A stretch of DNA of 64,000 nt from Octopus bimaculoides (GCF_001194135.2 NC_068981.1:99441485-99505484), one strand, 5' to 3'. Shown: positions 21,784 through 61,725, numbered from the stretch's first letter. Notes: generated by a model not told the origin, from the sequence alone. Numbers and translations are program-made.

Positions 21784-21961
21784 TACATCAAAACTGACAA
21801 ATAAATCTGAAACTAATGTCTTCTACAATAGTCTTGGGAAATGAAAATTAGAGACATGTCACAAGATTATAAATATTTTGTACATATATGATCATCCTTG
21901 CAGACATTACTTGTCCATTTTGTCTTGTGAAGACATCTTCATTATCAATATTTGTTATACT

Positions 21962-22156: not shown

Positions 22157-22779
22157 GTTTATTTGTTATACTCACCTGCAAGGAATGTCACTCATATTAT
22201 ACCCCATACCCTCACAAACGGTCTCTGCACCCCTCTGAACTGCTTAGATTCCTCATTCCTGTTCTCACTATTTCAATCAATCACCTTTCTGTGCCTTTAC
22301 CCACTGCCTGTTATCATTTCCCAACACCCACCTACTATAGCCCCTTATGTATCTCCACCTTGATCTACTGCTTTGTTCTGTTCTCCTTTCTGAGCCACTC
22401 ATTTATCTTATACTTTGCCCCTCTGCATACTGGCATTTCCTACCATTTGCACCCCCACCCTTGTTTATCACTCACTATACAAACCTCTGCCTCTATCTGG
22501 TACTCTTTTATGAAAGCATCTTCTCTTTCATTCCTTCCCATGATCTATGGTCCTTGTCCTCTTTTATACTCACCTTCTTGCTCCTTGAGTTTACTTTAGC
22601 ACCCCATAACTACCTTCCTCTTACCTCCTTCAGCCATATATCTCTATAGCAAAACATCTGTGCTTGTCCCTCTATCATACTTGCTATCAAATTCAACAAC
22701 TGGCATACATCCACTCACTTCCACTCCCAAATATTTCCTTTCAGTAGTTGAAGCTTTTTCCTTCCTTTTCTTCTCTGGT

Positions 22780-27179: not shown

Positions 27180-27395
27180 TCAGGTTTCATTGGATTTTGT
27201 CTTCGCAACATCTGTACAGCTTTTGCTTTCTTCAGATGTTTTTTTTCCTTCATTCAGGTTATATACCCAGACAGCAACATCACTGTGGGATCCATGAGCT
27301 AAGTAATGTTGATAACATTTAAGAAGCTCCTGACAGCGTTGTTCATCTTTTTTGTTATCATAGTCAGGGTACTTCTCTTTCAAACGTTTCCGAGC
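27180..27395 (-). CDS. DUSP22: DUSP exon 5 (ARKRLKEKYPDYDN...KSNET*)
   Basis: Poly-T acceptor ...TTTCAAG, phase 0, stop TGA at 27180-27182. Confidence 0.85.
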   Translation of the reverse strand, partial: ARKRLKEKYPDYDNKKDEQRCQELLKCYQHYLAHGSHSDVAVWVYNLNEGKKTSEESKSCTDVAKTKSNET

Positions 27396-30300: not shown

Positions 30301-33300
30301 AAAATCCTGTATTTTTCTATTGATACCCCATCTTCCTTTTATAACTTTGAGGATGAATTAAAACTGTCACTAAATAGCCTGTCACTCAATTTACTGTATC
30401 TGCTATGACTTGATTGTTAACAGAAGTGTTAATTTGTTATTAATTTACACATTTGACTTTGGCATATATGTCAGGTTTGGAACCTCTTTCGCAGTTTTTT
30501 TTTTATATAAAGGTCTGTATATCTACAGAAGTGTTATAATTTTTGCCCTGAAAACTGTCTACAATGATGATAATATAATCATACTAACTACTTTAACTAA
30601 GTCAATGATGAGTTATAGGATCATAATCTGATGTTAGTATTTATCACAAGGCAGTGGTTCATAAACAGTTTGCTGAGGCACATTGGATGTTGCAAGGTAT
30701 ATCTAGGTGCACCACAAATTTTTGCAAGTAAAATGTAAGGTCACAGAAAATCCATGCTAATGTTTGAGTGTCATGAAAAGGAGTTATTTTCAATTTCATA
30801 AAACATAAAATAAGGAAAGCAATAGTTTTCTTCCATTTGTTTTGTTTTTTTTACTTAATTTTTAATTCTAAAACAGCCTTTATAAACCTACCTTGTAAAG
30901 TGCACCAGGATTTTTTTTTCGTTCAATCAACACTGTCACAAAATCAAAAAAGACTGAGAATTATTGCCATAAGGTTTATATGTAGGGTTTCTGTTAGTCA
31001 GTATTGACCATGTATCTGTGCATGTATGTGCAGGCCTGGGCAAGCAATTGTCTATATGCGTAAACCTCTCCCACTCCATACCACTGATATTTATCCAAAG
31101 GAAAGGCCACTGACTTGAGGCAATACAGCTTGGCATCAGTATCATCACTGGTGTTGTTAGAACACAAAGAACCAGAACAGTTACCACAAGACAACTCACC
31201 TAACTTTCTACCAACACTAATTTGCTGCCTTATAAGGTTTATAAGTGCTTTCAGAAGATAAAAGAGAAGCAACATTAACCCTTTAGCATTCAGATAGCTC
31301 TTGACATATAAATGTTGATTTATTCACATTGTTTTGAATTAATCATGCATAATCTCATAGTTATGAGATTTTAATGATATGGTTGTTTATTTTTAGAATA
31401 ACATCATAGAATAGGTGTAAGAAGTCAGATCTGGTCAGTTTAAACATAAAACTGGTAGAATATTTAGGCTGCATATAGCCGGTTTAAATGCTGAAGTTAT
31501 AATTATTGTAGAAGACGTCATTGATTTTTGTATATAAAAACAGAAATGTATATTATTATTTTTTTTTTGTTTTTAGTTTTTTTTACATCTATATTTAAGC
31601 TAGACTATCAAAATATTCATTAATCACAAGAACAACATGAAGTTATTATTCAGGCATTGAAAGAGAAAATGTAAGTGGAAAATGCAACTTTATTTCTTTA
31701 GATTCTTAGACTGTTTCCAGCCAATGTTGTAAATACATCATTATTCTTAAATCCTGTCAAGATATGGACTTCACAGGATATGGCAGGACCACAAGTTTGT
31801 AGTGGAGAGGCATCAAGAGTGGAAGAGTTAATGAAGATGATTATATTGATTTCAAATTTTGGCATAAGTCCAGCAAGTTTGGGGAAGGGGCTAAGTTGAT
31901 TATATTAACTCCAGTGCTCAACTAGTACTTATTTTATTGACCCCAAAAGGATGAAAGGCAAAGATGACTTCAGTAGAACTTGAACTCAGAACGAGAAGAC
32001 AGATGAAATGCCTTTAAACATTTTGCCCAGCATACTAACAATTCTGCCAGCTCACCACCTTAATGAAGATGATCATATTAACTCAGAGTTAAACTAAAAC
32101 ACTGCACTATAAGTTGAAGGTGTCGTTATATATTATTTAGGCGAATTCAGCAAGTATGGGAGACAACTCCAGTCATATTTCAAACTTATAACTCCTCAGC
32201 AAAGCATGAATTTTTAACACAATAGCTGAAGAAGTTTTAAGAGAATCAGATGTACCATATTCCACATAAAAAGATGTACACTATTCCACATGAGCACACA
32301 TAAAACTGTTACTTCGTTTAGATACCATAATTACTTCAGGATTGTGTAGTTAATGTTAAAGAAAACTACATAAAATGACCAACTCACAGCAAGCAATGGT
32401 TTGGCATTGTCATGAACAGCTAAAATATGAGTAACTTGATTTTCTTTTTGTGCCTTTTCTTCTTTAGAATCATAGAAGTTTCCAATGTAAACTCCATCAA
32501 GAATCTGAAAAGAAACATTTCAAAAGAACAATAAAATTAATAGAAACAAATAATACACAGATATACCCCTTCACTCCTATAATACATTTAATGAAATGAT
32601 ACTTGAAATTTACCTCAATTGAACAATTTCTTTGTCCATGCTGTTATCAATAACATTTTTATATTCATATTTCGAATAAAATACTCTGCGTTGTGCATTT
32701 CAATTAATATTGAAAATAAGAAATAATTGATGAATTTAATAAACTAATTAAATATCATTATTAAGCTGGTTTTAGATAATAACTTAACAAAAGCATTTTA
32801 AGGTTGGTGATGCTGGGTAAGTTGGTATCAAAAGTGTTAAGAAGTTACAAGCTTTTACCAGGTTACGTGTTGCATAAGTGATTCTTATCATTTAATTAAC
32901 ATTTTGCACAGAGATAGTTTGCACAGCCAGACCAGCTGATAATTCCTGTTCATGTCTATCACTCTCTTTTATGATATGCACTTGAAGTTTATTTCTCAGA
33001 AAAAATAATAAAGGCTAACTGTAGGATGACAGACTTTCTCATTTACATCCTATAGTATTTTACATTTGAAAAGATTAATTCCGACTGAATATGTTTTGAA
33101 AAGACCAAATATACCACTGGCTGCTGTTTCCAACCACAAAAATAGATTTGCAGAGCCTTATCATGTTGGAAGAGCTTAGTAAAAGATACAGTTCTTAAGG
33201 TGATGAGTAACCAGTCAGATGCAATGTTAATTTTAGTGAAGCTGGTGACCTTACCAGAGACAATGAAGAAAACTGACAGACCAATCAGTTTTCAGTGTTG

Positions 33301-36136
33301 TCCATCTCCTACACTGTAGACTGCCTCTTATGAAAATAGAAGAGGATGCTGAAGAATTGGGTAATGACAGTGTGATAGAAATAACAGCTATCTTTGGAAA
33401 TTTATGACTAAGTAAATTAACCAACAAGATGGTAATGTAACTGTGTTAGTTAAGTCCTGCCTGAATCTCATAATATTTTCTATTTCTTCTTGAGGAGAAA
33501 AGTGGCAAGAGCCCTAGAGCCTGTGCACAACTAAAGCCCCATAAGAAAATTAATATATTGGGTAACTTTAAATTAGTCTCAATCTCTGCCACCTACATTT
33601 GAGGTATCTCAAATAATATTAGTCCCCACATTTACTACAGAAATATATGTTCTCCACCCCTATCCAAAATGGATCTTTACATCTGTCTCGAAAAATAAGT
33701 TTTTTCACAATATATAATTTCATGTAACATATATATCTCATGTTTTAAAAAAGGTATATCATGTCCTTACATGTCATACGTTGCAACCAAAAGGATCAGT
33801 ATCAATCAAGAGGGTACCCTACTGCAAAATACTGCCTCAAAATGTCCCTTCCAGTACATGCCAGTATTCAAAATGGACACAAAAGTGATGGTATTTGTGT
33901 TTGCATGATTAGGTAGTGGTATATTGCAACTATTCCTAAGACAAGAACAGTTGACACCATCTGATATAGGGCTGCATGTACTAGGGCCCAGTCAAGGCAT
34001 AGTTATGTGTTACTAATTGTTCACTGTGCTAAATGTAATAGTTTAACCAGACAAAACTTTCCAGTGCCTGTTCTCCAAATCATAAATCAAATGGTGCAAA
34101 GGAGAGCAAACAATGGTTTGTATTTTGTCTTGGAAATTGCTTGCCTTGTAAGATTTTCTCTTTTACAGTAGATTCACAACTGCAAAGGCCACAGTCAGTT
34201 ATGGCATCTAAACAAGGATGAGATAGAGAACACTAAACGGAGTAAGACGTTTGACAGATTGTCTGAACATGAAAACAGTACAGTACACAGAATCTATTGT
34301 CTAGCATTAGTGAGAGTTGGGGAAGAGGTTAGAGAATGATACAGGGATTAGTTTGAGGTCTCACAAAGGAATCATACGAGAGACTGAAAAATTACAAAAT
34401 GTACTTACGGAGAATAATTAATGTGGACATTTTGGTTAACCTTCAGTTAACTACAACTATTTTTTTTTTCATTTCTTTGCCAGGGTCAGAAACTGGAGGT
34501 TAACCGAAATTTTTTTTAGGCAAAGAGGACATGCTTTCCATGAATTGGCAATTATGGAATTACATCCATAATGCAAACTTCTTGGGAGTCATAGAACTCA
34601 TTATGAAATGCTAGGCTCATTATGATCTGTCCAAGTCAAACATACAGCAAAGGTTAGAGATTTACAAGAAAAGACGGGATCTGCTATAAATTTAGTATTA
34701 CTCAGCATCATCTCAAATTAAATTCACCAGTAATTGTGTGGATTATTAAGTTCAGAACTATCTAAACTACTCCGTGGTGGAGTAGGCAACATTCGCATTG
34801 CTAAGGATGATTTTAAACTTTTTTAGTCATTGTAAAATGAAGATTAAATGATCAATGTAATGAATGGATGGTTGGAGGGACGGATAGGCGGACAGTCAGT
34901 CAGACAGAAACAAACATGAAAATGTTACTATAGGCAACATTAGCTCATAAGCAGTGTTTAACACAAGGTTTCTTTTGAAGCGTTAAACAATTTCGAATAT
35001 TACTGGATTTGTCAAATGTTACGAATTTTATGTTTACATTCTTCAGGTTCATAATTTCTATAAAACTGGTTCGCAATCTTCAATTTGCAAAGAACCAGTG
35101 AAAATATATAAAGAGACCATACATTTGTAATGTGTATCGGTTATCAGTAAACAGAATGAGTAACTGTAGCAGTCGATCGATAACTGGCGGGTAGCACGGT
35201 TAGTATAGGAGCAGTAATAGGTTTTATTGATACATGTTTACAGCAATATTCCAGTGGTGGGTACTGAAACACTGAGAGTCATACGAATGTCACAAGACAT
35301 CAGATCCACTGTAATTCATTTATTGTTATTGTCAAAAGTCATTATTATTATATATTAGAAATCAATACTAGGGTTAATGTAATCGCTCAACGGCTCCCTC
35401 AAAATTGTTTGCAGCGTGGCTAAATTAGAAACATTATTAATAGTTACACATTTGTATTTTGTATATACATAATTTTCCCTACCCTTTTTCATTCATATAA
35501 TTCAGTGTAAGCCCCTCCTACACTTTTTTGTGACATTACCTTGTAATGTCACTTCATCGTCGCCCTTATGGCAATAATAAAAGACAACATTATTATAATT
35601 ATTATCGTCATCATCTGCTAGCCATGATGTAGTCGTAGTTGTCATCACATTGACTCAATTACCCTCGAAAATACTTATATCAGGGTAGGAACGATTCATA
35701 TTGACAATCAAAGTTACGAAAAGATAGTTATTTTAACTATTTTGAAGAGAAACCAAATTCTACAGAGAAATATTTTAAGGGCGAGAGAAAAGATGCTTAA
35801 AGAGATAATCAAGAAGTAATTAAAATCAGTTGTCTGGAAGTTATAATAGTGAAAATCAAATAAAAAGAAAGAACGATTCATTTGACGAAGGGAGAAATAT
35901 TCACACCTATTGTTTATTATTTCATGACGTTATTTCTAGATAATATTTGTATATTTTCTAAAGTAAATTATTCTCTAAGTTTCATTTTCTAAAATCAAAT
36001 GCTTTTGAAATCATATTTAAAAAAACATTACAGTTGTAAAGGAATAAATGTTATTATAAACTGTAAGAAGGCTGTGCTTTATAACCATCAAATAAACAGT
36101 AGAGTTATTGCTTACCTTGCTCATTCCAGACCCCAT
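27180..36136 (-). CDS. DUSP22: Dual-specificity phosphatase DUSP22/DUSP15 family, five coding exons, 216 aa
   Basis: join(complement 36116-36136, 32388-32504, 29743-29867, 29093-29264, 27180-27395) = 651 nt, all introns GT-AG with compatible phases. Protein: MGSGMSK ILDGVYIGNFY...VTHILAVHD...SDNPQQCLSQYFEESIDFIH...VLIHCLSGVSRS (CX5R)...ANPNYGFQKQL. Closer in sequence to DUSP22; probably a co-ortholog of DUSP15 and DUSP22. Confidence 0.93.
29093..29264 (-). CDS. DUSP22: DUSP exon 4 (C-LSGVSRS...GLEA), 172 nt
   Basis: TTCCAG acceptor, GTAAGT donor; completes the catalytic Cys codon. Confidence 0.95.
29743..29867 (-). CDS. DUSP22: DUSP exon 3 (DKVYLCIFASD...VLIH), 125 nt
   Basis: TTATTCAG acceptor, GTGAGA donor. 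Confidence 0.95.
31279..31496. mobile_element. piggyBac-like MITE
   Basis: TTAA then CCCTTTAGCATT; right end AAATGCTGAAG then TTA (decayed). Confidence 0.6.
31850..32060 (-). mobile_element. SINE family A, strongly CpG-depleted copy in DUSP intron 2
   Basis: Same layout as 12715 and 49885, with most CpG sites read as TG or CA. Confidence 0.75.
32388..32504 (-). CDS. DUSP22: DUSP exon 2 (ILDGVYIGNF...AKPLLA), 117 nt
   Basis: TTTCTTTTCAG acceptor, GTGAGT donor, phase 0/0. Confidence 0.95.
33050..33300 (-). mobile_element. Highly decayed CR1/L2-like RT fragment
   Basis: Weak remnants of the SKAFD..WH and GVPQGSVLSP regions. Confidence 0.35.
34540..34750 (+). mobile_element. hAT-like transposase remnant
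   Basis: HNANFLGVIELI resembles the NGNFLGLIELL motif of hAT/ZMYM-type transposases. Confidence 0.4.
36116..36136 (-). CDS. DUSP22: DUSP exon 1 (MGSGMSK), N-myristoylation consensus MGxxxS
   Basis: ATG GGG TCT GGA ATG AGC AAG then GTAAGC; equivalent to the vertebrate MGNGM.K first exon. Confidence 0.93.
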
Positions 36137-36213
36137 GAATCTTCTGCTTTTGACTCCCGCTAAAGACAAGACACGTTCAAAACACGCCATGTTCGAACGA
36201 GCTCTTTCTCTCG

Positions 36214-36221
36214 CTTTTATA
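36214..36221 (-). promoter_or_regulatory. Candidate TATA box for DUSP
   Basis: TATAAAAG on the minus strand, about 80 nt upstream of the ATG. Confidence 0.45.
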
Positions 36222-36768
36222 CTCAGACTATTCTCTCCTACTCATCTCTCCCCCTTCGCTTTAATTTGTTATATTTGCCTCATACTCTCCTCTTCCAACT
36301 TTTCCTTTTCCCTCTCACTATCCATCTCTACTATCCCTACTCCGACAGCTCCTACCCTCACTCTTTAACTTTCAGTATTCTCGCTTTAAACTTTTCTTTG
36401 GCAAATAGATTATGTAACGGACTCCTTTCTTCCATCTCTTCTCCCATTTCCTTCGTTTTCACTTCCTTTATCTTTCTTTCCTCTATTTCAGTCTTCTTCC
36501 TTTTCCCTATACTCTCTCCTTTTTATTTCTTTTTATATTGTTTTTCTTTTCTTTTCATCTCAGGCAATGAATCCTCGCTTTGTTTCTATAGTGTACTTCC
36601 TTTCTTCCTTCTCTTCCCCTATTTTTCTTTTCTCTTTTCACAATGCTGTCTCCGTTTTCCTCTCTCGCTTATCTTGGTAATAAACTATTAATTTGTCATC
36701 AATTTTTCTCTCACTCTTTATTTCCTCCCCTTCTTTAAGTGTCTGTTAATATAAACGTAATGTGATCA

Positions 36769-36782
36769 GTAACCATGGAAAC
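36769..36782. promoter_or_regulatory. RFX X-box motif
   Basis: GTAACCATGGAAAC matches GTHNYYATRRNAAC at all 14 positions. Confidence 0.5.
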
Positions 36783-37505
36783 GACAGCAACAAAGTATAT
36801 AGTGTTTACAATCTACACATTGACCATGGTTTATTAGCTGTATGATATTTATTGACTAGTTAAGAAGAGTTTATCACGGCCTAGATCTCTTAAGTGTAAT
36901 ACTGCGGCCCTCGTCGAGCGGACTTAACATCAAGAGCATTTCAGCCACGCCCCTCTCGTCTTTGTTTACACTGAGGCCTGCAAAGCAATGCAAATTTTAA
37001 TTTTAAACCTAGGTAATCCTGAGATTGGCATCACTCATAACCTTTGTAAGGCATCCCAGGCTGGTTTGAATATCTGTGTCAACGGCTGCAGGAAAAATAG
37101 AATAAAATAAAATGTAAAAAAACGTGGATGAGGAAACAATTCTAGATGGCTGTGGCAGGTATGGAAATGGTTACACGACAGATTTCATTACTCTGTGGGA
37201 AGAAGTGGAATCGATCTTTAAACATTTATGAAAAATAGTGGCTTTATATTTGCTATTTACTGCAAAAACAGAACTCAGTAAAACCGGTCAGTGAAATTTG
37301 CACAGCAGTTCAAGCGCAGACAAGTAGAATAATTAATAAATTCATAGTAAATTCACGGTGTTTTTGGTTAATTTGAAACGTAAGTTATACCCGTTAACTT
37401 GATAAATCCTGTCAGCGCATGTACTGTTATGCAAATTTGACTAACCGGTTGAGATGAGTTCTAATTTGTATACAGTGTAAAATAGATGCTTGTTTGCTTC
37501 ACGCT

Positions 37506-37735
37506 CTTGTTTGATGGGGCTGGAGTCCTCCCAGGTTAGTGGTCCCAGAGGCGTCATCATGCATAGGGCCGACCTGGTCCACCAGTGCTCTCCCATCGCT
37601 GGCGGTTTCGTGGCAGCCCCTCTGCATCTTCCAAGGTGACGTCGAGCCTCAGGAGATCTTCTACAATGACGTCCAGCCCTCTGGTGAGGAGCCTACCACG
37701 AAGCTTCTTCCAGCCTACAGCTGCTGCGTCGAATG
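37506..37735 (-). mobile_element. LINE 3' fragment (RTE-like), CpG-retaining
   Basis: Homologous to 8947-9153. Confidence 0.6.
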
Positions 37736-38064
37736 AAAATAAAGCGGGAGACAGAGGTCATGTCTGTATCAGCGCATGCGATGGGAAGCTATGAGGTATG
37801 AAGTAGATATAAACTACTAATTTCTCTGTAGACAAAAGATGGGCATTCTTTCTCCGATGAAAGACTAAGAAGACTAGAAACTGTCAGATCTATCTAACTT
37901 TTTCTGCCATCAGGTCAAAAACCAACCAGTGGTGGTTTACTTCTCGCGACGAGACTAAAACCGGGATCTTTTCGTTTTGACACATAGGAGGCCTGATTGT
38001 ATAGATGTTTTATATGCCAATTGAGAATATCACAATTTTATTTATTTATATATTTATTTATTGG

Positions 38065-38420
38065 CAATTAATAACAAAAAAAGTTACGAGCCTTAAATTC
38101 ATTAAGTCAGCTATAGTTATAAGGGAAATATAGACTTACAAATTTTTAATTCCGACTCCCAAATACTACAAAAACAAGCAAAATCTAAATGTAATTGTAG
38201 AGATACGACTAGGTGTTCTTTGAAGGGAAATTGTCAAAAATATAGTATACAGAACAGGTATAAAATCAGCTAACTGTACAGTAAAAACGTACATCGGAAG
38301 TTACAGGATGTTGCACAAGCACATGGCTCTGAGAGCACTGCTTTTTAAAAGAGAAACAGCCGAAAGCTAATGGAGCCGGTTATGTCATTCACTAATGGAT
38401 ATTACGATCTGTACTCTCTT
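38065..38420 (+). mobile_element. Penelope-like (Neptune-type) fragment, Zn-finger/GIY-YIG region
   Basis: Across frameshifts: LSYSY..N...KCNCRDTTRCSLKGNC...IVY...KTYIGS. Confidence 0.6.
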
Positions 38421-39199
38421 AATGCTTTACTTTAAAGCATGAGTATAACAACTGATTATTAGTATCACTATGCCTAAGCGAAATAATGTTTTGTGTGTGT
38501 GTGTGCGTGCGTGCGCGCGCATGTATATTTCTCTTATACACACGCACACACACAGACAGACAGATTCGCGCACACATTCACACACACACACACATATAAA
38601 GAGACAAAGAGACAGACCGCGCGCGCACACAGACAAATTATATAAACCTTCCTGTTGATAATATGCACAGTAAAAAAAGTACACGTACTCGTAAAAAAGA
38701 AAGGTTGGATCTAAATGTATTTATTGAAACTAACGCTAAAATAAATGGTGGAATTGCACGGTTATTATAAAAACTATAACGTTGTTGGAAGTTTGTAGTG
38801 AAACATGAACTATAATACCGCTTTTGAAATAGTTTTTCTGACGCGTTTGATTCTTGAGAAGGTATAGATACACTTATGTAATACTGGATGTGGAGTTTTA
38901 GGAGATAACATCTTTGAAATCTATATTTTTTGTTAGACGTTCGTTACTTCTATGTTGAGAGTTGTAATTTAATACCTTTATCTTTCCGACAAGAAGTGAA
39001 TGCTCCGAAGATAACACTGTCTATATTGTCCAAAAACTTGAGTTACTACATCTGCATGGGTACACATATGTGTATATGTGTGAGTGTGTGTGTGTATTCA
39101 CATACATATACACATATGTGTATGCGCCTAGATGTAGTGATCAGTTTTGGGGCAATATTGACAATGCTTTTCTAGAGCGCGTTCATTTCTTGACATGTG

Positions 39200-39231
<32 letters not shown>

Positions 39232-40087
39232 TATTCTATTTTTTAATTATTATAAATCTTCCACTGAGGAGGGAGCCGGTTTCCAACAAAGATACAAGGC
39301 TCCGTCTTTGAGATGTAGTTTACACAGACAAATTCACGTTTGGAACTTGAGAAAAGTCTTGCATATTTTTACTGTTCCACTCACAGATTGCACTTGTAAT
39401 GTACGAATTAGCTAGTCGATTTCTCTTTCTGAAAATCCCAGTTTATCCAGATTCTCCTCCAAGCATTTACCAACAAAACCAAGTGCTCCAATTATTATTG
39501 GTATGAATATGAATTTATAGTCTGGATATAGAAGCTGGAAGTTTATAAACTTTATACAATATCATAACCTCTACTATTGAAATAATAATATATAGGAGTT
39601 GAACGATATGTTATGGAACTGAGCCTTACAATTATTTGGATATATTTTTTCTGGTGCATAAATACTTATCATCTCTCTCTTTCTCTCCTCTGTGTGTGTG
39701 TGTGCGTGCGCGTGCGCATGTGTAATCCAAATAATAAGACAAAGAAATACTTCAACACATCTTTAATGATCAGTTCCAATTGATTCTGTACCAAATCTGC
39801 TTGCAACGCCAGTTTAAGCAACAATTCGAAGCGAAAATTTACGTAATGTTTGCAGTTTTAGACATTAAAGTGGCATTTCATCAGACTTGCATCAAAGGTG
39901 GGCTCTTACATTGTGCCAATGTAAGAGCGCACCTTTTGATGCAAGCCTTCACTAAATCCACACGATGGTTTCACCGTCATGAAACAAGGATTTTCTACAC
40001 TTAAAGAATTTCGGTGTTAGTCTGAGTTTTGATTGCTCAGAACTCGGGTTGAGTGTTTCATTGGAAATACCCTATCTTTAAATCCTG

Positions 40088-40096
40088 CTAGGACCT

Positions 40097-40133
<37 letters not shown>
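40088..40133. repeat. (TA)n microsatellite
   Basis: Direct inspection; start approximate. Confidence 0.8.
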
Positions 40134-40136
<3 letters not shown>

Positions 40137-40884
40137 AAACGTGTCTCCTCTCCCCTTAAAAACGAACTGCATGAAACTAGAGCTTTCTGTCTTTGTGTAA
40201 ATACTTTGTCTCACCATCACATAATATCTCTTCAACATAGCTAAATCTTCACCACAAGTCTAGTTCTCCACTTCAAAGCCAAAAACTACGACCAACCCTT
40301 TACAAATCCTAAATGAAACCCATAATGGAATACTATTTCCGCAGCTGGGATGGTGCTGTTATTACACATGCATACATCCTACACTGCATTTAAATAAAAA
40401 TCCCTCGAATGATCGACATGAAGTTGCTCACCAACACACTCCAACTCTGTTCCACTTTTCCTATTCTATTAACTCCACTTACAATAAAATTCTTCTCAAC
40501 AGTGATGGCTGCTCTCGTGTCACCTTTAAACTCTGTCACCTTTAAACTCATTTTTTCTTCCCTTCTCGTGACTTATAATACCCACATTCTAGGTCCTACA
40601 CTGACTACTTCACCCAGGCTTTCTTCCCAGAATGTCAGTCCTCTAGAATTCTTCTATCCTGTCTGTTTTTCCTTACATTGTCATCTTGCATCTTTTTTTT
40701 GAAGAGAAACATTAACTGGAGCCAAGAATTAACTGTTGTGGCAATTGTATCAAGGTAAGAGAATATTTCTATTACAAAAGTAGTGGCTCTCACCACAATG
40801 AGATTCAATCGATTTTAAAGAAACCAACCCTTTGAGATTAAATAGTCATAATATGCCGTTTTTCCCTCTCACATATTATCTACG

Positions 40885-42740
40885 TCTGTAAGAAGACCGG
40901 AGGTTGAGGAGGGGTAGTAGTTTTGCTCCGAAAAAGCTTGGCTCTGCTGACAAATACAATCTTTGTAGACCCAGAAGGTGGGCTGGTCGTTCTAGACTTG
41001 AAGTACAGAGATTAGGCTTTCAGATTAGTTGGCATTTATGCGCCGAGTCTTAAAAGCAAACAGACTGATTTCTATCGACGCCTGTAGAACTTTCTCGTGA
41101 CGTCGAAGACATTAGTGGCGTTAGATTTTAACACTATACTGGATGCACGCCAGGATTGTGCTGGCTCAATTAATAGGAAGGAAAACATGCACCTCATCGA
41201 TCTGCTTGAGCGGTTTCAGCTGGCAGATCGTTACAGACTTGATCACCCTAGCGTCCCAGTGTGAACCTGGAGTAATGGCGACGAGTCGTTCAGGTCTCAT
41301 ATAGATAGAATAACAGTTCGTACTAGAGATAAGTCTAGTTTTAGTTGTCCTCAGTTTGTTCTGGTCTCCTACACGGATCACAAGCTAGTGATGTGTAGGG
41401 TGAACATAAATAGAATACATAGATAGGGATCTGGCTAGTGGAAGCTAAACAAGACTATTTTGTCTTATGTGGCATACCGCAGTCAGATTAAGGAGGCACA
41501 TGTTAAATGACAGGTGGTGATTTGCCCTCAAACGAGCCATTCGACTTGAGTCAATTAGATTTAGCCAACAGCTAAGTTTAGAGTAGAAGGGAATCTAGTC
41601 AAGGATTTAGAAGAGGCGTTAAGGTTGGGCTCTGCATCCCAAGTTTTGACAGCGAGATCGGCCTTGGACAGACACCTCAAAATCAAACACGAGGGATGCA
41701 GAGTTCGGGTTAAAGTACGTGCATTGGACCGCGAAGGAATTAACGTTGCCGGGTGAGCCCGTACAGTAGAGACCCAGCGTGGCAATGATGCCGCAATTGG
41801 ATTTTTGGTCGATGAACAGGAACGTTTGATTGAAGGACAAGATGAGATGTGTGAGGTCTCTTACATTGCCGAGTTGTTCGGGAGGAGTGAGGCGCTGGAC
41901 CATGGTGAGCCCCTTCGGGACTTCCTGATTGGTGGTCCGCGTCTCTGGGCACGAGAGGCTGAGTGCTGTGAGGGACCGATCACGGCTAAAGAGGTTATAG
42001 AGGTACTGTCCGAGTGCCCCCCGGGACAAGTCGCGGGTATTTGATGGACAACCCTACGAGTTTCTCAAAAGTATGCCAGACTTGTTCGGGCACCTACTGG
42101 CCAGCGTCTATGCCAAATGGCAGCAGAATGGGAGAATTCTGAAGGCTGCGAGCCGGTGGGTGGTGACGTTGATCAGAAAGGATCTGAGCAAGGGGAACAT
42201 TATTGATAACTTTAGGCCCATAACTCTGTGAAACACACAGTTAAAGATATTGGCACGGGTCGTGGGCAGCCTTGTTGGGGAAGCGCAAACATGCGCCATC
42301 CCAGGCAGGACGATACACGACAATCTCCACCTCATACACTACACCTTAGAGCGGGTGGGTAAAATATCTGGCAAAGGTGGGGACCTGGTACATTTAGACT
42401 AGTCTAAAGCGTTCGATAGGGTTGACCATCGGTACCTGGCGGCGGTTCTCGGAGTGGCCGGTCTAGACCCAACTTTCTGAGGCTGGATCGCTGCTTTGTA
42501 CAGCAACATCGAGTCTGCCGTCCGGGTGAACGGTTTCTTTTCGAAACCGTTCGACATTAAGCGTTCTGTTCGCCAGGGATGGCCCCTGTCTCCGCTTTTG
42601 TATGTGTTGGCTCTTGAGCCATTGCTGCGAAGGATGGAGGCATCTTGCGTGATCTGAGTTGTGCAAGAACTGCGACCGCGTATGCGGATGACATCACCAT
42701 CATCGTGTCAGATGAAAGGCAGCTACCTTGTGTAGAAAAG
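40885..42740 (+). mobile_element. L1/Tx1-clade LINE ORF2 remnant (APE endonuclease plus RT), many stops and frameshifts
   Basis: GRLVVLD...FRLVGIYAP, DFNT, RSHIDRI (APE); FRPITL, QTCAIPGRTIHDNLH, SKAFDRVDH, SVRQGWPLSPLLYVL, AYADDITI (RT). Confidence 0.9.
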
Positions 42741-42826
42741 TTACGAATGAACGGAAATGACTAAGTGCAGCCATCTAACGACAAAAGGGGATACGTCAGA
42801 TAATGGCGGTGGGTCAATTAACCCGG

Positions 42827-45400
42827 TGATGTATAAAATATGGAATTTTTAATTATTATCTCGATTTCTGTAAAAGTTTTAAAATTTTCATTCGATTTCA
42901 TTACATTTGTCATTTCATTATAATCACACTGTGTATGTTCGCTTGTCTGTCTTTGTGGTGTCTCCACTGTGTTGGGCCCTGTGTGGCCAATAAAAGAAAC
43001 TGAGATGAGAAATCGCAGGAAGTCGAAAGGTGTCGTTCGTAGAGTCACAGGAAATAGTTGAAAAGTTGTTATAGTTCGTTGAGTTGTTTTGGATTGGTTA
43101 CAGTTGTTGGCAGAGTATTTGGGAATACATCAAATGGAGACAGCTGGTGTCTACCCCATACCGTGGTATTATATATGACACTGTATTAGTGAACGACAAT
43201 AAGGTAACATATATAGAAACCACGTTATAAAAGTGGCGACGAGTGATTCGAAGGTTACGTTGGTCATTAACAATTTTTTATGATACAAAAAATTCGTTAG
43301 TTATGGGAGACCTACTAGCTGACGTATTACAGTTGCAGGAGTTGCACCAACAACTACAACACAATCAGTTCTGGAACTGATGTTGAGGTGGTCGGGAAAC
43401 ACTTCAAGTTCGTTTTCTCCAGATGGCTTAGCGAATGTTATAACTGAATTTAGTTATAACCCAGAAGAAGGTATAACCTTTTCGGTGTACTTCAGTAGAT
43501 ACGAAGAAATATTCAAGGAAGAATGCAAGTGTTGGACAGACGATGAAAAAGTGAGACTACTGTTACGGAAACTAGGTCCTTCAGAACATGAAAAATACTG
43601 CAATTTTGTCTTACCTAAAAAAAAAAAAAAAAAAAAAAAACATGTTTCGAGGAAACAATTGAATTGCTATCCAAAATGTTCAGCGATAAGAGTTCCCTGA
43701 TTAACACTAGCTGGGAGTGTTGGAACCTAGTAAAAGAAGAGGACGAAGATTTTGTCATTTATGCCGGAATCGTAAATAAAATGTGCGAAAAATTTAAACT
43801 GAAGGAATTATCTCCGGATACGTTTAAATGCCTCGTCTTTGTGCAAGGTTTGATAGCAAACAAAGATGCAGAAATACGTGAACGGATTCTTACAAAACTA
43901 GAACATGAGGACCAGAATTTAATCCTCAGGCAGTAGCAGAGGGATGTCGAAGAATTATCAATTTGCGACAGGATGTAAAGAAGATTGAAGAAAAAATTTC
44001 TAAAGTACAGACATGTCAACCGGGAATAAATAAAGAAAAAGGAATGTCATGGCGAAGTTCATGCTATGGGTGTGGAGGTCTGTATTTTAAGAAAGACTGC
44101 CCATTTCAAACATGGAAATGTTTTAGCAGTCAAGAATAGGACATAAAAACTCGCACTGCACAGCGAAGCAAGAAAGGTTGGAAAAAAAATTCTTCCAAAA
44201 AGGTTTTTTCAATGGAAAGTCATGACGATACCCCAAAAAGAAAGTACGTGTATGCAAAAATAAACGACGCGAACGTGAAACTATAACTAGACATGGGTAG
44301 CGACATTACAATTTATTGATACCGACATGGGGAAGAAAATTGGTAAACCTACATTAAAGAAAACATCGAAAAGTGCACGAGGCGTTACAGGTGAAAGATT
44401 ACACTTAGGCGAAATGGTAAGAGACATTACATTTCGTTATAAAACCAGTAAAACAAAAGTGTTTGTGTTAAAAAATGCAACAAACTTGTTCGGCACCGAC
44501 TGGATGGAATTGTTTCATTGAATGTCTGAAAACGTGTCACTATCCGCTACCTACTCCGGAAGATATTTTTGTGAAGTTAAACGGGGACAAGTTATTTTCG
44601 AAACTGGATCTCTTCGATGCGTACCTGCAAATTAGAGGAGACGAGGAATGCTCAAAATGCCTAACAGTGAATACGCTTAAAGGACTATATAGATTTAACA
44701 GATTACCATTTGGTCTAAAGGTCACACCTGCAGTTTTACAACAGGTTATGGGTGCAATGTTTGCGGACTATGAATTCGCAGTTCCATACTTGGATGATAT
44801 ATTAATCAAAAGTGAATCTCGTGATCAGCATGTCGAGCATGTAAAAATGAAAAAATAAGAGATTACGGTTTCACACTGAGTGACGGAAAATGTGAATTTT
44901 CTTACCTAAAATTAAGTATTTAGGACAAATTATCGACAGGAACGGACGACGATCGAACCCGTCGAGGGCAGACGCAGTTAAAAAATATACCTTCTCCGGC
45001 AAGCTTTTCTAGGTCTAGCGAATTATTATCAAAATTATATACCATATATGCATAAATTGAGGGCTCCACTTAATAATTTGCTAAAAAAGGATGTAAAGTG
45101 AAATTGGTCAAATAATTGTCAAAAGGCGTTTGACGATATTAAAAAAATATTAGTATCGGATTTGTCGCTGGCTCATTTCGATCCTGCAGAGGAGTTTATA
45201 GCTTCTGACTCTTTTGAAGAAGGCGATGATTCATGCCTCACGTTCTCTGAAAAACTACAGTCAAATAGAGAAAGAAGCTCTAGCAATCATTTTTGCTGTG
45301 AAGAAATTTCACAGATTTTTGCACGGTAGAAGTTTTTGGCACCAAACTGATCACCGACCATTAGTATCAATTTTGGGGTCGAAGAAAGGAATTATAATTA
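42827..45400 (+). mobile_element. Ty3/Gypsy LTR retrotransposon, degenerate, 3'-truncated (no integrase or 3' LTR seen)
   Basis: Putative 5' LTR about 42827-43230; PBS TGGCGACGAG 43234-43243; gag FSYNPEEGITF...LLLRKLG; knuckle CYGCGG...DCPF; protease LDMGSDITI; RT LDLFDAYLQI, LPFGL, YLDDILI; RNase H NYSQIEKEALAIIFAVKKFH...TDHRPL. Confidence 0.9.
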
Positions 45401-45449
45401 TTTAAAGCTATATATTGCTAAGTCCACACTTACAGTTTGCATCTCCAGT

Positions 45450-45650
45450 CGGGAACCTCCATCTTGTATGTTGATCTACTGGAATCTGTTCAGAGAAATC
45501 TAGCCAAATACCTTCCATCAGTCTCTTAGCATATCTACAACGTCTTGCTTCTCTGGGCATCGATACAATAAGGTTTCGATGTCTAGCAGTTGATTTTGTA
45601 GAAACCCTTGGTCACCTTTTTGAATTCAATATCTCTACCATCCATAGATA
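45450..45650 (+). mobile_element. CR1-like LINE 3' fragment
   Basis: LESVQRNLAKYLP...LQRLASLG resembles the CR1 (I/L)ERVQRR.T motif. Confidence 0.55.
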
Positions 45651-46499
45651 TGCTTATAAAAATAAATAGAAATAAAAATAAACAGCGCAAATTGTCGAGG
45701 CATGAAATAAATTACCCGCATCCTTCAAAAACCATCCTTCTTGAGATTTGCTAATGCTACTCCTGACGTCTCATGCACCACTTCTTCTTTGTAGTTCAAT
45801 CCCTCTTTTCTGTCTTTCTGTATTTTATACTGTGTACTATGCATACACTTTTGGCCATCATTGTTGCTTTTTGTCCCGCTTTTACTTTTGTCACAAGCGA
45901 CCATATGATGTTTCATCTATACTGATATGATAGCTGCTTGAGTTAAAGAATGAAGATATGTTTCTATGCTGTATGAAGAAATAACTGAACAATACCTGCG
46001 AACATTTAATAGAAGAATTTATTGTCGCACATAACAAACTGCGTTGCCATTTTCAGTTGACAACAGCAATAATTACAGACTGGGAGAGAGATACTGCTCT
46101 GAGATTATAGCAAGCTATTGGTATGGCAACATACGGATTGTCCAACATATGTGAAAACAATTGTGCTCTCTTCGTGGCGACAGTTCTTGGTCATCTATCT
46201 TATCCTTCTGTTCTGGCCGTCTACCTAGGCCGTCTGGTTGCAAAAGTTCGCACCGAACGGTTTATATAGGGGACCAGAAGCCAAATCCTAGAATGTCCGA
46301 GAAAACCTTGTCCACGCCATTGCTTCATGCTGATTGAGTCGATTAATAGACCAATCACGTGAAACTATGGTGGTTTGTTCGTGATGTATGACCTCATGTC
46401 CAGGGATTCGGTTTCGAATCGCCGCTACACTCTTTTCCGACGAGTTGTAGTGCACCTGAGCACTATATACAATCAGCTTATTACTATAGAAGAGATAGG

Positions 46500-46530
<31 letters not shown>

Positions 46531-46570
46531 AATAAGAGAAGAGTATTAATATCAGAAATATCTGAATAAA

Positions 46571-46960
46571 ACGAGGTGCATTCATTAAAAAGTAATTATT
46601 TGCTGCCAACTCTGCGGTGGTTTGCAAATGATGTCTCTCAAACTGTCTTTGTTGTCATGCTCAGAAACTGAGAAGATGGTGAACTAGTGAGATTATCGAT
46701 TGCGTGCGTGTTTTTACAGTTGCTCAGGTTGATATATAGTCAAGCGTTGAGTAAGTGTAGATGTGAAAATTGAGTATAGCTAGACAGACGCGCATAACAC
46801 TTTTGCAGATTGGATTAGCATCTGACGATAATTTAACAGAGATACCAGGGGATGAGGAGTGATAAAGTGAGTGAGTTTTGAGTAAAACAAGTACGGATTT
46901 TTTCATGTCAAAGTTCATAGACAGTTTCCAGAAAATCTTCCAAGTTGAAAAAAACCTTCA
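46571..46960 (+). mobile_element. Possible mariner 5' remnant
   Basis: CGAGGTGCATTCA TIR-like start and a decayed KIEY start region. Confidence 0.3.
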
Positions 46961-47524
46961 ATGCACTGTTACAATGATCTATTTCAGTATATTAGAGTAT
47001 TGATCGGTTTAGTGATTCAGGACAAAACTGAACAGTTATCTGCAATTATTGGAACACAAAGGTTCTCGAATATAAATTCAATAAAACCTTGTTTAGATTG
47101 ATATATAATAGTTACACTTTAATCAGAGTGGCAATAATGTACAGAAAATAGCCCATTCCTTCCTTTGCTTGTTAACAAAGTGCATTGAAGGTGAAATAAA
47201 GTGAAATATTGTTTTCTTTAATATTGTACAAAAGTTACGATTTCTTGTCGTGAGCTTTCAAACTGACTATGCAAACGCCCACCTATTATTAGAAGTTATT
47301 GTATCGTTGAAGCAAAATAGTTGTCGTTACTATTCCCAATAACATTAATGATTCTGACCCCCTTTTGATAGATGGTGCCTTTTAATATTAAAAACGGACA
47401 TTAGTAACTGCATACGATACTAATTAGACGGTTCTTATCCTGTCACCGACACTGCTGTGTTTATTGTAAAGATACCGTTTAAATAACTCATACCAACAAG
47501 TAATAAATATTAATTCCTTTTACT

Positions 47525-47720
47525 AATGGCACAAGGCCAAAAATTTTAAAGAAGCGGGATAGTCAACTGCATGTACTCTAGTGCTCAACTGGTACTTCTT
47601 TTATCGACCCGAAATGATGGAAGACACAATCGACCTCGGCGGAATTTGAACTCAGAACGTAAAGCCGGAAGAAATGCTGCGGAACATTTTGTCCGGCGTG
47701 CTTACGATTCTGTAAGCTCG
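47525..47720 (-). mobile_element. SINE family A
   Basis: TCGACCTCGGCGGAATTTGAACTCAGAACG core. Confidence 0.8.
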
Positions 47721-48402
47721 CCTCATGCAGTAAATATTAATGGTAGATATTGAACTACAGACGAATGTTTTTATCTGACAGTTACTATTTAAAATTCTCT
47801 TATGAGCCTGGTGAAGCCAACGAGAACCCACTCCAGAGTATCTTTTCCAGAAGATGAAGTAAAATATTCAAACAAATGATTAATTGAAAAAAACAAAACA
47901 AAAAACAACAACAACAAAAACCCGTTATTACAAGACAGGCGTTCAATCTCCGTTAAGAGAAAGACAAAAACAAACTTATTGCTATCGAGGGGAAATGGGC
48001 AAATAACATACTAAATTTATGAAATTTAAAGATCAAAAATATTGTTTTCTCACGAAAGTAAAAGGTTAACTGTCGCAGAAATAGTTGATTGAATAAATCT
48101 ATGATCAGGACTTGTTTTATCGACAACGAGAAATGAAAAAGCAGTCGGTCCAAGTTAATTTGAACTCAGAACATAACTAATAGACTTGACAACGCTGGTC
48201 ATGCACTCCTAAGATGTACACGTGTTTATAATAGTAGAGGCGTCCAAGTGATTTGCTGACACCAATATTATAGAATTTAAAATGCAAGTGATATTTTTTT
48301 TTTGTTGAAAGGCATTACTTATAAAAAGAATATCCAACAACATCATGGTGAAAATATGCTTCACGCTTTGTTAAAGACCGCTTTACGGCAAAAAGTTTAT
48401 TT

Positions 48403-48416
48403 GTTGATATAGCAAC
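48403..48416. promoter_or_regulatory. RFX X-box-like motif at the TTLL9 5' end
   Basis: GTTGATATAGCAAC, 13/14 match to GTHNYYATRRNAAC. Confidence 0.45.
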
Positions 48417-48418
48417 CA

Positions 48419-48429
48419 ATGATGTCAAG
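48419..48429 (+). CDS. TTLL9: Putative TTLL9 first coding micro-exon (MMS-R)
   Basis: ATGATGTCAAG then GTAGGT; phase 2 fits the exon at 52472. The alternative start is ATG 52479. Confidence 0.45.
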
Positions 48430-51400
48430 GTAGGTAATTCCCAAACTTTACTGTGTTTATCTTTCGATACGCGAATAGGTAATATTATTTACGGAAACTA
48501 ATGTACCACACAATCCAGTGGTGTAAGAGTAATGAGATACACTCCTCTGGTGAGTTGTGATGGTGGTTTCGTTTCGATTCTCAGATGTTGTCGTTACACA
48601 TCACTTTTATTATTCTCCAAAGAAAGTGTGAAGGTGACATCTTATTTCCCTTACCTCCGTCACCAGTCAGATGGTGTTTGGTTGAGACTTGGGCCTAAAT
48701 TAAAATCCCTCACGCAAAATCAGCTTCGTCTGTCATCTCCCAGAGTTAGCAAAACAAGTACCTGCAAGAGGCGGGATCGAACAATTTCCTTATACACACA
48801 CGCACAAACATAACACACGCACGCAATGGAAACAATATTTCCTTTTAGGTTAGAAATAAGCGTAACTTCTGATTAACGTTGTTCATTAATGATGAAAATG
48901 CACAATCGACCTCGGCGAAATTTGAACTCAGAACGTAAAGCCGGAAGAAATGCTGCGGAGCATTTTGTCCGGCGTGCTTACGATTCTGTAAGCTCGCCTC
49001 AAGCAGTAAATATTAATGGTAGATATTGAACTAGAGACGAATATTTTATATGATAGTTACTATTTAAAATTCTATTATGAGCCTAGAGAAGCCAACGAGA
49101 ACTCACTCCAGAGTATCTTTTCCAGAAGGTGAAGTAAAGTTAGAGAGAAAAAGTTCGTTCGATTTTGGATAACGTTTCTTCTTTGAGGCTATCCGGCTTA
49201 ACATGAACACTTGACACCTTAGGTGCCTTTAGTGGACGTCACTATGTTGTATCATTCAGCCCAGTTCTTCGGTTTGAGGATAACTTCCTGCCCTCACCCC
49301 ATTAGTTTTGTAGGCTATATAATTATGAGTTCGGCTTTCTCACCTGAATGGATGGCAGGGGCATAACTATAGTTTGTTGCCCATCTCTATTTTATTTTTT
49401 CAACCTTTTTTAAAATGTATATTTTTAAACAAAAATTTAGTTTTCAGTAATGTCGGTAAAATTAGGTGGTGGTGGTGGAAAGTTTTTATCGGTGGTATTT
49501 CGACTCACCTCCCTCTCTTTTTGGATGAATTTTTGTGGAGATGCGTTCCTGGAGGTAATTCACAACTCCGACGAAAAAAAAAAAAAGAAAAAAGTTTTAT
49601 TAATATAATCGTGAAAAATGTACGTCTGTATTCTATTTAAAAATACACATTTTAAAGAAAGTTATGAAGAAATAATGTCGGCGATGTACCGAACTGTAGT
49701 TGTGCCGGTATATTAAACAAAATTTCTTTTATATGTTTTGGTCATTAGAATACGGGCCACAACCTCGATGGGCTTATTTCAATCTGGTACTTATTCTATT
49801 AGTTTTTTTTTTTTTTTACTGAACCACTAGGTTACAAGATAAAAACAAACCAATAAAGTTTTTATTTCTTTATTGCCCATAAACACAGAGGGGCTAAAGA
49901 TAGAGGGGACAGACAAAGGGATTAAGTCGATCACATCGGCTCCAGTGCGTAACTGGTACTTATTTAATCGACCCCGAAAGGATGAAAGGCAAAGTCGACC
50001 TCGGCGGAATTTGAACTCAGAACGTAACGACAGACGAAATACCGCTAAACATTTCGCTCGGCGCGCTAACGATTCTGTTAGCTCACCGCCCTACAAACCA
50101 ATACAAGTTGTCAAGCAGTTAGAGAACACACATACACAATATATGCAAATATATTACATAGGCACAAACAGATGTATACGGCTGTCCAAGGAAATTTCAT
50201 AAGTCACATTTGTATAGTAAGTAGTTGAATGGATATAAACCCTTCCCCACTCTATCTCGCCCTTACAACCTTACCTTTTCACATTTCCACACAAACCGAC
50301 AGGAGACGGTTCTTGCCAAAGCAATGACTAAAAAAAAAAAAAGGATCAGTCTAAGGGGCATAACTCATATAGGGTTAAAAGCTAACCTTACTTTTTGAAT
50401 GTTTTTCATTCCCTTTTGTTTTTTGTTCCGGATGTGGTGTTTGAGACTGCCTGTGCAAAAGAACCGAAGTGATACTTGTCCGATCAGCGAAGTCTGACAA
50501 ATATTAAATTATTCTTCCATTCTAGGAAGAATTTTGTTTTGTATGAAACCGCCCGGAGGAAAAACAAAATTGCGATTATGAATGCTGTATAACATACATA
50601 CATACATACATACATATGTGTGTGTGTGTATGTATGTATGNNNNNNNNNNNNNNNNNNNNNNNNNNNNNNNNNNNNNNNNNNNNNNNNNNNNNNNNNNNN
50701 NNNNNNNNNNNNNNNNNNNNNNNNNNNNNNNNNNNNNNNNNNNNNNNNNNNNNNNNNNNNNNNNNNNNNNNNNNNNNNNNNNNNNNNNNNNNNNNNNNNN
50801 NNNNNNNNNNNNNNNNNNNNNNNNNNNNNNNNNNNNNNNNNNNNNNNNNNNNNNNNNNNNNNNNNNNNNNNNNNNNNNNNNNNNNNNNNNNNNNNNNNNN
50901 NNNNNNNNNNNNNNNNNNNNNNNNNNNNNNNNNNNNNNNNNNNNNNNNNNNNNNNNNNNNNNNNNNNNNNNNNNNNNNNNNNNNNNNNNNNNNNNNNNNN
51001 NNNNNNNNNNNNNNNNNNNNNNNNNNNNNNNNNNNNNNNNNNNNNNNNNNNNNNNNNNNNNNNNNNNNNNNNNNNNNNNNNNNNNNNNNNNNNNNNNNNN
51101 NNNNNNNNNNNNNNNNNNNNNNNNNNNNNNNNNNNNNNNNNNNNNNNNNNNNNNNNNNNNNNNNNNNNNNNNNNNNNNNNNNNNNNNNNNNNNNNNNNNN
51201 NNNNNNNNNNNNNNNNNNNNNNNNNNNNNNNNNNNNNNNNNNNNNNNNNNNNNNNNNNNNNNNNNNNNNNNNNNNNNNNNNNNNNNNNNNNNNNNNNNNN
51301 NNNNNNNNNTTCGATTCCCAGACCGGACATTGTGAGTGTTTATTGAGCGAAAACACCTAAAGCTCCACGAGGATCCGGCAGGGGATGGTGGCGAACCCTG

Positions 51401-61657: not shown

Positions 61658-61725
<68 letters not shown>

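Follow-up and report, generated by a model that had tools for sequence, protein, structure and literature searches.

The window analysed here is a 64,000-nucleotide stretch of the Octopus bimaculoides genome (CM046601.1:99,441,485-99,505,484, assembly GCA_001194135.2), and all positions given below are counted from its first letter. Reverse-complemented, positions 17180-46190 agree at every base with CM046601.1 99458664-99487674. It carries a DUSP15/22-type phosphatase gene (DUSP) on the minus strand and the 5' part of TTLL9 on the plus strand. The two genes diverge head-to-head, the orientation expected of a bidirectional-promoter pair. An earlier reading of this DNA from its letters alone (the sequence-only reading) had proposed the divergent arrangement and likened it to that of DUSP15 and TTLL9 on human chromosome 20q11.21, and the exon models of both genes bear the arrangement out. 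It is very likely that the octopus inherited this adjacency from a distant ancestor.

Exons of the phosphatase gene and of TTLL9

The phosphatase gene is composed of five coding exons on the minus strand between positions 27180 and 36190.

36116-36190, minus strand: DUSP exon 1, the first coding exon; the conserved myristoylation-type start MGSGMSK is read from 36136, and the RefSeq ATG is at 36190 (MACFERVLSLAGVKSRRF-).
32388-32504, minus strand: DUSP exon 2 (ILDGVYIGNF...KPLLA), located by a probe match and by tblastn of the RefSeq protein P0001.
29743-29867, minus strand: DUSP exon 3, which terminates in CAT TG with gt next and holds bases 1-2 of the catalytic cysteine codon.
29093-29264, minus strand: DUSP exon 4, which opens with T TTG TCA GGA GTA TCA CGA AGT.
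27180-27395, minus strand: DUSP exon 5, the last coding exon, with the stop codon; 100% identical to residues 164-234 of P0001.

Human DUSP15 and DUSP22 sequences, which served purely as probes, enabled the location of three further exons besides the first. Spliced together, the first four exons yield a model of 145 residues with 100% identity to the RefSeq protein named dual specificity protein phosphatase 22-B (P0001, 234 amino acids, PF00782), and tblastn of P0001 back onto the window returned all five exons, including the fifth. The catalytic loop HCLSGVSRS, which agrees with the HCxxGxxRS signature, is restored intact across the junction of exons 3 and 4, and the reading frame is continuous.

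At position 36136, the minus strand reads ATG GGG TCT GGA ATG AGC AAG followed by a gt donor, and encodes MGSGMSK. The start that the sequence-only reading had placed there is thus present in the sequence; RefSeq begins translation at an in-frame ATG at 36190, located 54 nucleotides (18 codons) upstream. Argonauta shares the upstream in-frame ATG extension (MACFERVLSLAGVK.. versus MARLEQVLALAGVK..). The DNA of exon 1 is 77% identical between Octopus and Argonauta over 36194-36113, with the similarity beginning 4 nucleotides before the ATG at 36190. Translation from 36190, if used, would bury the glycine of the MGxGM motif and make N-myristoylation impossible. Octopods may produce two phosphatase isoforms from the two ATGs.

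The exons of TTLL9 are distributed along the plus strand from 38805 to 62196.

38805-38861, plus strand: first coding exon of TTLL9 in the current RefSeq model XP_052823150.1; MNYNTAFEIVFLTRLILEK, with a gt donor.
40705-40754, plus strand: second 5' exon of TTLL9 in the RefSeq model; RNINWSQELTVVAIVS-, both splice sites (acceptor and donor) being good.
48419-48429, plus strand: alternative first coding exon of TTLL9, 11 nucleotides, encoding MMSR; ATGATGTCAAG, with a gt donor.
52472-52519, plus strand: TTLL9 exon shared by every model, with an ATG at 52479 (MGELKKCLKNSKL).
54291-54377, plus strand: TTLL9 exon; ERQIRFRCGIQNTVFDVLQARAGWQEVV.
55412-55523, plus strand: TTLL9 exon; SEEDWDFFWCDREFSKDNYTGLYLHEHQRMLHFRNHHE.
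62111-62196, plus strand: TTLL9 exon; LTRKNLMVKNLKRLKRQVERDHGKAEGQ.

The last four of these exons have compatible phases and match the N-terminus of TTLL9. The window contains only about 114 codons of the gene, and the TTL domain is encoded past position 64000. The annotated octopus TTLL9 product (475 amino acids) carries PF03133, and the part of the gene that encodes this domain lies outside the window and is taken from the annotation.

The 5' end of TTLL9 differs among the models. The exon at 48419-48429 joins 52472 in frame to give MMSRSGMGELKK, which is exactly how the older O. bimaculoides model (XP_014774666.1, UniProt A0A0L8H7X0; P0255, P0256) begins and, save for two substitutions, how O. 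vulgaris isoform X13 (P0132) begins. The methionine of MGELKK at 52479 is the start of O. sinensis isoform X3. The two starts given for TTLL9 by the sequence-only reading, 48419 and 52479, are therefore both real annotated alternatives and are mutually in frame. The current RefSeq protein (XP_052823150.1; P0251, 475 amino acids) begins with MNYNTAFEIVFLTRLILEK-RNINWSQELTVVAIV-SRSGMGELKK, and its additional peptides map to the well-formed exons 38805-38861 and 40705-40754, which the sequence-only reading had missed. These peptides have no counterpart among the O. sinensis and O. vulgaris TTLL9 isoforms compared. O. sinensis isoform X1 has another N-terminus again, which was not found in this window. 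We rejected 38805 as the true translation start of TTLL9 because its peptide is unmatched in the isoforms of the two other species, and the two exons are probably non-coding 5' exons with a chance in-frame ATG. If they are transcribed, the promoter of TTLL9 would be close to DUSP.

An 18-bp unit, GTAAGAAATCTCCATGTT, is repeated 4.4 times at 55524-55603 on the plus strand, beginning exactly at the 5' splice site after the exon end at 55523, so that the TTLL9 donor is present in four tandem copies. A downstream copy of the donor, if used, would insert in-frame hexapeptides of the VRNLHV type without a stop codon. The second of the two assembly gaps stops about 100 nucleotides 5' of the exon at 62111. 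Both O. bimaculoides RefSeq TTLL9 models are without the conserved segment YDFFPTSFELP, which O. vulgaris and O. sinensis have. In its place, the current model puts an unrelated exon at 63033-63101 on the plus strand (AAVTAISSRKMSIIDKLRRGQNY), and the older model has LIWIYV. The true YDFFPTSFELP exon is not in the window, and the missing segment is likely an annotation or assembly problem.

Orthology and gene order across animals

The identity of the octopus TTLL gene was determined by comparison with other members of the family. All named matches to a 408-residue TTLL probe, among the 120 listed, are TTLL9 proteins from sponge and ctenophore to vertebrates, with identities of 61-77%. The probe is chimeric, composed of the octopus N-terminus, fragment P0122, and crinoid sequence, and was used for probing only. 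The search with the 114-residue fragment encoded in the window gave short fragments only among the matches listed, and every named match was TTLL9. Against TTLL9 of limpet, sponge, ctenophore, amphioxus, and vertebrates, the same 114 residues reach 50-62% identity, compared with 34% for TTLL1. For the full-length O. bimaculoides TTLL9, the values are 57-64% with metazoan TTLL9 and 39% with TTLL1; apart from TTLL1 and human TTLL9, the comparators were taken from a database. The closest solved structures to octopus TTLL9 are those of TTLL6 and TTLL7, with far weaker E-values. By these comparisons, the gene is clearly TTLL9 and does not group outside it, the outcome that the sequence-only reading had named as fatal to the proposed linkage.

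The phosphatase was placed by a neighbour-joining tree calculated from 196 columns with 300 bootstraps, for which genuine DUSP15 sequences were obtained by an exhaustive HMMER search. The vertebrate sequences form the clades DUSP15 (99.7%), DUSP22A (100%), and DUSP22/22B (61%). The octopus DUSP belongs to a separate clade of protostome genes together with that of the tunicate Clavelina (91%). The monophyly of the vertebrate genes reached 57% only, and the resolution of the tree is modest. The position of the octopus gene outside all three vertebrate clades fits that of a gene preceding the duplications. In this tree it is a stand-in for the ancestor of DUSP15, DUSP22, and DUSP22A, homologous to the human DUSP15 side of the pair, and the label DUSP15/22 used in the sequence-only reading is correct.

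The third vertebrate copy has a different neighbourhood. The gene annotated as DUSP22-A-like in Alligator mississippiensis adjoins COX4 and a gene of the UPF0172 family, and no TTL-domain gene lies within its 10-kb flanks. The human COX4I2 gene sits in the DUSP15 region at 20q11.21. The presence of COX4 beside Alligator DUSP22A and of COX4I2 near human DUSP15 fits a duplication of chromosome segments, and Alligator DUSP22A is in keeping with a third DUSP15/22 copy of vertebrates, carried by a paralogue of the human COX4I2-DUSP15 segment.

The mammalian arrangement can be read from the literature. At hg19 chr20:30,461,617, one indel carries two annotations, TTLL9 intron 1 and DUSP15 promoter (PMC4927100), and a differentially methylated region at chr20:30,458,515-30,459,158 is assigned to DUSP15;TTLL9 (PMC12232872). 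A pig gene list gives the order MYLK2, FOXS1, DUSP15, TTLL9, PDRG1, XKR7 (PMC10734178). The divergent adjacency of DUSP15 and TTLL9 at human 20q11.21, which the sequence-only reading had taken as established, is thus confirmed, with the two 5' ends placed head-to-head and partly overlapping. We found no paper that discusses the adjacency of DUSP and TTLL9 or mentions TTLL9 together with a bidirectional promoter, in a literature search that did not cover the list of gene pairs of Irimia et al. 2012. In the available parts of the synteny supplements of PMC8851819 and PMC9023564, no block joins TTL and DSPc domains. The adjacency is visible in public annotations.

Gene order in other animals was surveyed by reading loci with 10-kb flanks; a partner separated by one to four intervening genes could lie outside such flanks. 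In the limpet Patella caerulea, TTLL9 (P0185, SNE40_007440) and DUSP (P0007, SNE40_007441) are arranged head-to-head, with their coding sequence (CDS) starts 1.7 kb apart. In the crinoid Antedon mediterranea, DUSP (10001-13457, plus strand) is followed by TTLL9 (15592-22609, plus strand), so that the genes are in tandem with DUSP upstream. The third gene of the Antedon locus, on the opposite strand, encodes a prefoldin-like protein of 134 residues, and PDRG1 aligns, in the same order, with the last two exons of this gene. The accession numbers of DUSP and TTLL9 of another crinoid, Anneissia japonica, are consecutive on one 700-kb scaffold. Those of O. vulgaris are also consecutive (CAI9715450, CAI9715451), and those of O. 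sinensis are close. Two further cephalopods were uninformative: in Argonauta the 10 kb upstream of DUSP are empty, and the conserved TTLL9 exons of octopus are located 16-18 kb from DUSP; in Acanthosepion the sequence stops 2.9 kb upstream of DUSP. The adjacency is therefore present in three lineages at the phylum level: vertebrates, echinoderms (crinoids), and molluscs (Patella, octopods).

The presence of the pair in protostomes (octopods, Patella) and deuterostomes (crinoids, mammals), together with PDRG1 as the third gene in crinoids and mammals, indicates that the linkage is at least as old as the bilaterian ancestor, in agreement with the age proposed by the sequence-only reading. A bilaterian origin of the adjacency is the parsimonious reading. 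The 5'-5' orientation, which molluscs and mammals share, suggests that it is ancestral and that the crinoid DUSP was inverted. The octopus genes could instead have become neighbours by chance or convergence, independently of the vertebrate pair, since coleoid genomes are extensively reorganised (PMC9023564) and new adjacencies do arise in them. By our own estimate, the probability that two named genes end up adjacent is of order 10^-4 per lineage if a genome of about 10^4 genes is shuffled, and here the same neighbours occur in four distant lineages. Both genes are orthologous across the taxa in which they adjoin, Patella has the pair in the same orientation, and the two crinoids retain the adjacency, with the PDRG1-like gene next in Antedon as in mammals. 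Such a coincidence is barely credible, and inheritance is retained as the origin of the octopus pair.

Spacing and persistence of the pair

The RefSeq CDS starts of the two octopus genes are 2.6 kb apart (38805 for TTLL9 and 36190 for DUSP), whereas the older TTLL9 model gives 12.2 kb. The distance lies between 2.6 and 16 kb, according to which of the TTLL9 starts holds. The interval and the mobile elements around it contain the following features.

36191-38804, no strand assigned: spacer of 2.6 kb between the RefSeq CDS starts, a candidate divergent promoter region.
40900-45410, plus strand: decayed retroelements, comprising a reverse-transcriptase fragment resembling a long interspersed nuclear element (LINE) and a remnant of a long terminal repeat (LTR) retrotransposon, recognised by Pfam matches and open reading frame (ORF) content.
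12.7, 15.5, 22.0, 31.9, 47.6, 48.9, 49.9, and 53.8 kb, both orientations: copies resembling a short interspersed nuclear element (SINE), identified by repeat comparison.

The spacer contains a CT-rich tract at 36.2-36.75 kb, a repeat copy at 37489-37745, and a CA microsatellite at 38.49-38.62 kb. The LINE-like fragment occupies about 40.9-42.7 kb, and its RVT_1 match at 42.5 kb is weak, with 21.7 bits against a Pfam cut-off of 29.6. The decayed LTR retrotransposon at 43.4-45.4 kb has matches to DUF7083 (gag-like), RVT_1, and RT_RNaseH. The SINE-like family has a unit of 160-200 bp and at least 10 copies in the window, in both orientations, with identities of 72-93%. No additional gene was recognised between DUSP and TTLL9 from Pfam matches and ORF content, and a search for tRNA-derived elements in 36-54.5 kb found none. 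The sequence-only reading was right that only mobile-element debris lies between the genes, namely LINE, LTR-retrotransposon, and SINE-like remnants. Its estimate of about 12 kb of insertions separating them does not agree with the current RefSeq TTLL9, which begins 2.6 kb from the start of DUSP. If the first RefSeq exon is at 38805, most of the transposon debris belongs to a TTLL9 intron and is not intergenic, so the 12 kb of insertions may be a TTLL9 intron.

We consider it likely that a bilaterian adjacency was inherited; it may have persisted by means of a compact divergent promoter region. A single invertebrate gene corresponding to DUSP15, DUSP22, and DUSP22A would have stood head-to-head with TTLL9 in the bilaterian ancestor. 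Of the copies that arose in the vertebrate genome duplications, only DUSP15 would have retained TTLL9 and PDRG1 as neighbours, which would explain why the octopus pair mirrors human 20q11.21. The two 5' ends may share a compact divergent promoter region that presents a small target for breakpoints and is possibly functionally shared. In the octopus, transposon accumulation would be concentrated downstream of the outermost TTLL9 5' exon, stretching the 5' introns and not separating the promoters. A shared divergent promoter would fit the anatomy of the locus, with a spacer of 1.7 kb in Patella, one of at most 2.6 kb in octopus provided that the RefSeq exons hold, and 5' ends that overlap in human. 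It would also fit, by analogy, the biology of the mammalian genes: DUSP15/VHY was first described as testis-restricted, and loss of TTLL9 in mouse reduces polyglutamylation of sperm flagella and impairs their beating.

Several observations weigh against this explanation. No partner was found within 10 kb in the scallop Pecten maximus, where the head-to-head neighbour is an unrelated gene of 104 codons, nor in the amphioxus Branchiostoma lanceolatum, the tunicate Clavelina, and the sea anemone Exaiptasia; of the seven non-octopod lineages with a direct answer, four thus have no partner at this distance. By weaker proxies, the genes are also apart in four more gastropods: Gigantopelta, Babylonia, and Littorina have both genes on one chromosome with accession numbers hundreds apart, and the two gene records of Biomphalaria differ in length, suggesting different chromosomes. 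The tandem pair of crinoids indicates that a shared divergent promoter is not obligatory. A blastn comparison of Octopus and Argonauta over the 10 kb upstream of DUSP detected no conserved non-coding DNA; it gave nothing at standard settings, and the first DUSP coding exon only at sensitive settings. The exon at 38805 depends on one RefSeq model, and the distance between the 5' ends would grow to 12 kb should this exon be spurious. The repeated loss of the pair indicates that any constraint is weak or lineage-dependent.

The same losses, the flipped orientation in crinoids, and the missing non-coding conservation between Octopus and Argonauta are what would be expected if the ancestral adjacency had survived without selection, a breakpoint simply not yet having fallen in the short spacer of some lineages while the pair was lost freely in others. 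DUSP and TTLL9 also have no known functional link, and a short spacer lowers the neutral chance of a breakpoint. This account departs from the promoter-based explanation at the step of constraint only. Octopods keep the pair despite the large-scale chromosomal rearrangement in their lineage (PMC13652810), and the 5'-5' orientation has been maintained in molluscs and mammals. Moreover, 5'-5' pairs as a class are enriched and co-expressed beyond controls (PMC3514665), and both mammalian genes have roles in testis or sperm. We rate neutral survival at a little under an even chance, and the choice between it and selection through a shared promoter is roughly balanced. The sequence-only reading overstated the case in taking the linkage to point to a shared regulatory constraint, which is no more than a possible cause.

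The long 5' introns of octopus TTLL9, of at least 10 kb, are a trait of bystander genes that carry the enhancers of a developmental neighbour (PMC3514665), and a genomic regulatory block of this kind could hold the pair together. However, neither DUSP nor TTLL9 encodes a transcription factor or signalling protein of development, the introns are packed with recognisable transposon debris, and, over the 10 kb upstream of DUSP, the alignment of Octopus with Argonauta is confined to DUSP exon 1. A regulatory block is thus highly improbable. A more specific form of the promoter-based explanation is that DUSP15/22-TTLL9(-PDRG1) forms a co-regulated sperm and motile-cilia module and has been served by a single common divergent promoter ever since the bilaterian ancestor. 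The membrane-anchored phosphatase would then belong to the flagellar pathway of the axonemal polyglutamylase, and the pair would have survived the coleoid reshuffling for this reason. We regard this module as unlikely, though less so than a regulatory block.

If the promoter is shared, the pair offers a small tractable case of how divergent promoters resist genome scrambling, with spacers of 1.7 kb in limpet, 2.6 kb or more in octopus, and less than 1 kb in human available for comparison. In that case, a functional tie, as yet unexplored, between a myristoylated phosphatase and the glutamylation of axonemal tubulin in sperm and cilia would be hinted at as well. Should the retention prove neutral, the pair would simply add to the known ancestral adjacencies, serving as a synteny marker only and showing which vertebrate DUSP copy kept the ancestral neighbourhood. 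The pair is of mild interest as one kept in a lineage known for genome reorganisation, and would not surprise comparative genomicists.

The remainder of the window is AT-rich (G+C about 35%), with abundant microsatellites and transposon fragments. The SINE-like copies sit inside introns of DUSP and TTLL9, and their translations read ..NRPRRNLNSE... A fragment of a mariner/Tc1-type transposase (PF01359) is located within a TTLL9 intron at 59594-60112 on the plus strand. The two assembly gaps (runs of N) are at about 50640-51310 and 61650-61990, and the segment 51310-51639, which flanks the first gap, is 93-96% identical to 1-162 and 17923-18249. An RVT_1 reverse-transcriptase ORF at 3723-4919 on the plus strand is followed by an ORF with a weak match to the GIY-YIG nuclease, a layout typical of Penelope-like retroelements. 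The open 448-codon ORF at 18799-20145 on the plus strand encodes a WD40 beta-propeller protein that matches human WRAP73/WDR8 along its entire length with about 50% identity. RefSeq gives the gene, which is convergent with DUSP, one exon, and the intronless form of this WRAP73 suggests a retrogene. Argonauta also has a WD40 gene downstream of DUSP, but the two are not homologous.

Comparison with known gene pairs

The closest general class is that of conserved ancestral microsyntenic pairs (CAMPs), which are non-paralogous genes with no more than four others between them in four or more of the 11 major metazoan lineages considered. Irimia et al. 2012 described 595 conserved non-paralogous pairs, mostly 5'-5', with shorter spacers and an excess of co-expression, and explained them by shared promoters or regulatory blocks (PMC3514665). 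Similar to the coregulated 5'-5' members of the class, such as HSPE1-HSPD1, DUSP and TTLL9 are non-paralogous, divergent, and common to protostomes and deuterostomes, and the compact Patella genome has only a short spacer between them. In contrast to the class, their retention is patchy, with adjacency confirmed here in three phylum-level lineages. The pair is probably a CAMP, a further case of a known class. Since this class has about 600 described members (PMC3514665), the claim of the sequence-only reading that the pair is the strongest signal in the window was too strong.

Among individual loci, the Patella pair resembles that of octopus in its head-to-head orientation, its adjacent locus tags, and the start of its DUSP, MGNGMNK. 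It differs in that its CDS starts are separated by 1.7 kb with no gene called between them, whereas those of octopus are separated by 2.6 to 16 kb. In the crinoids Antedon and Anneissia, DUSP and TTLL9 are likewise immediate neighbours, followed in Antedon by the PDRG1-like gene as in the mammalian order, but the two genes share one strand instead of diverging as in octopus. The human DUSP15-TTLL9-PDRG1 block differs from the octopus locus in that the octopus DUSP precedes the vertebrate duplications and is not a specific orthologue of DUSP15, carrying the NCBI name DUSP22-B, and in that the octopus spacer and 5' introns are laden with transposons. The two loci share the two gene families and the divergent 5'-5' orientation. 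In human, the DUSP promoter adjoins or lies inside TTLL9 intron 1, and the octopus RefSeq model likewise has TTLL9 5' exons near DUSP.

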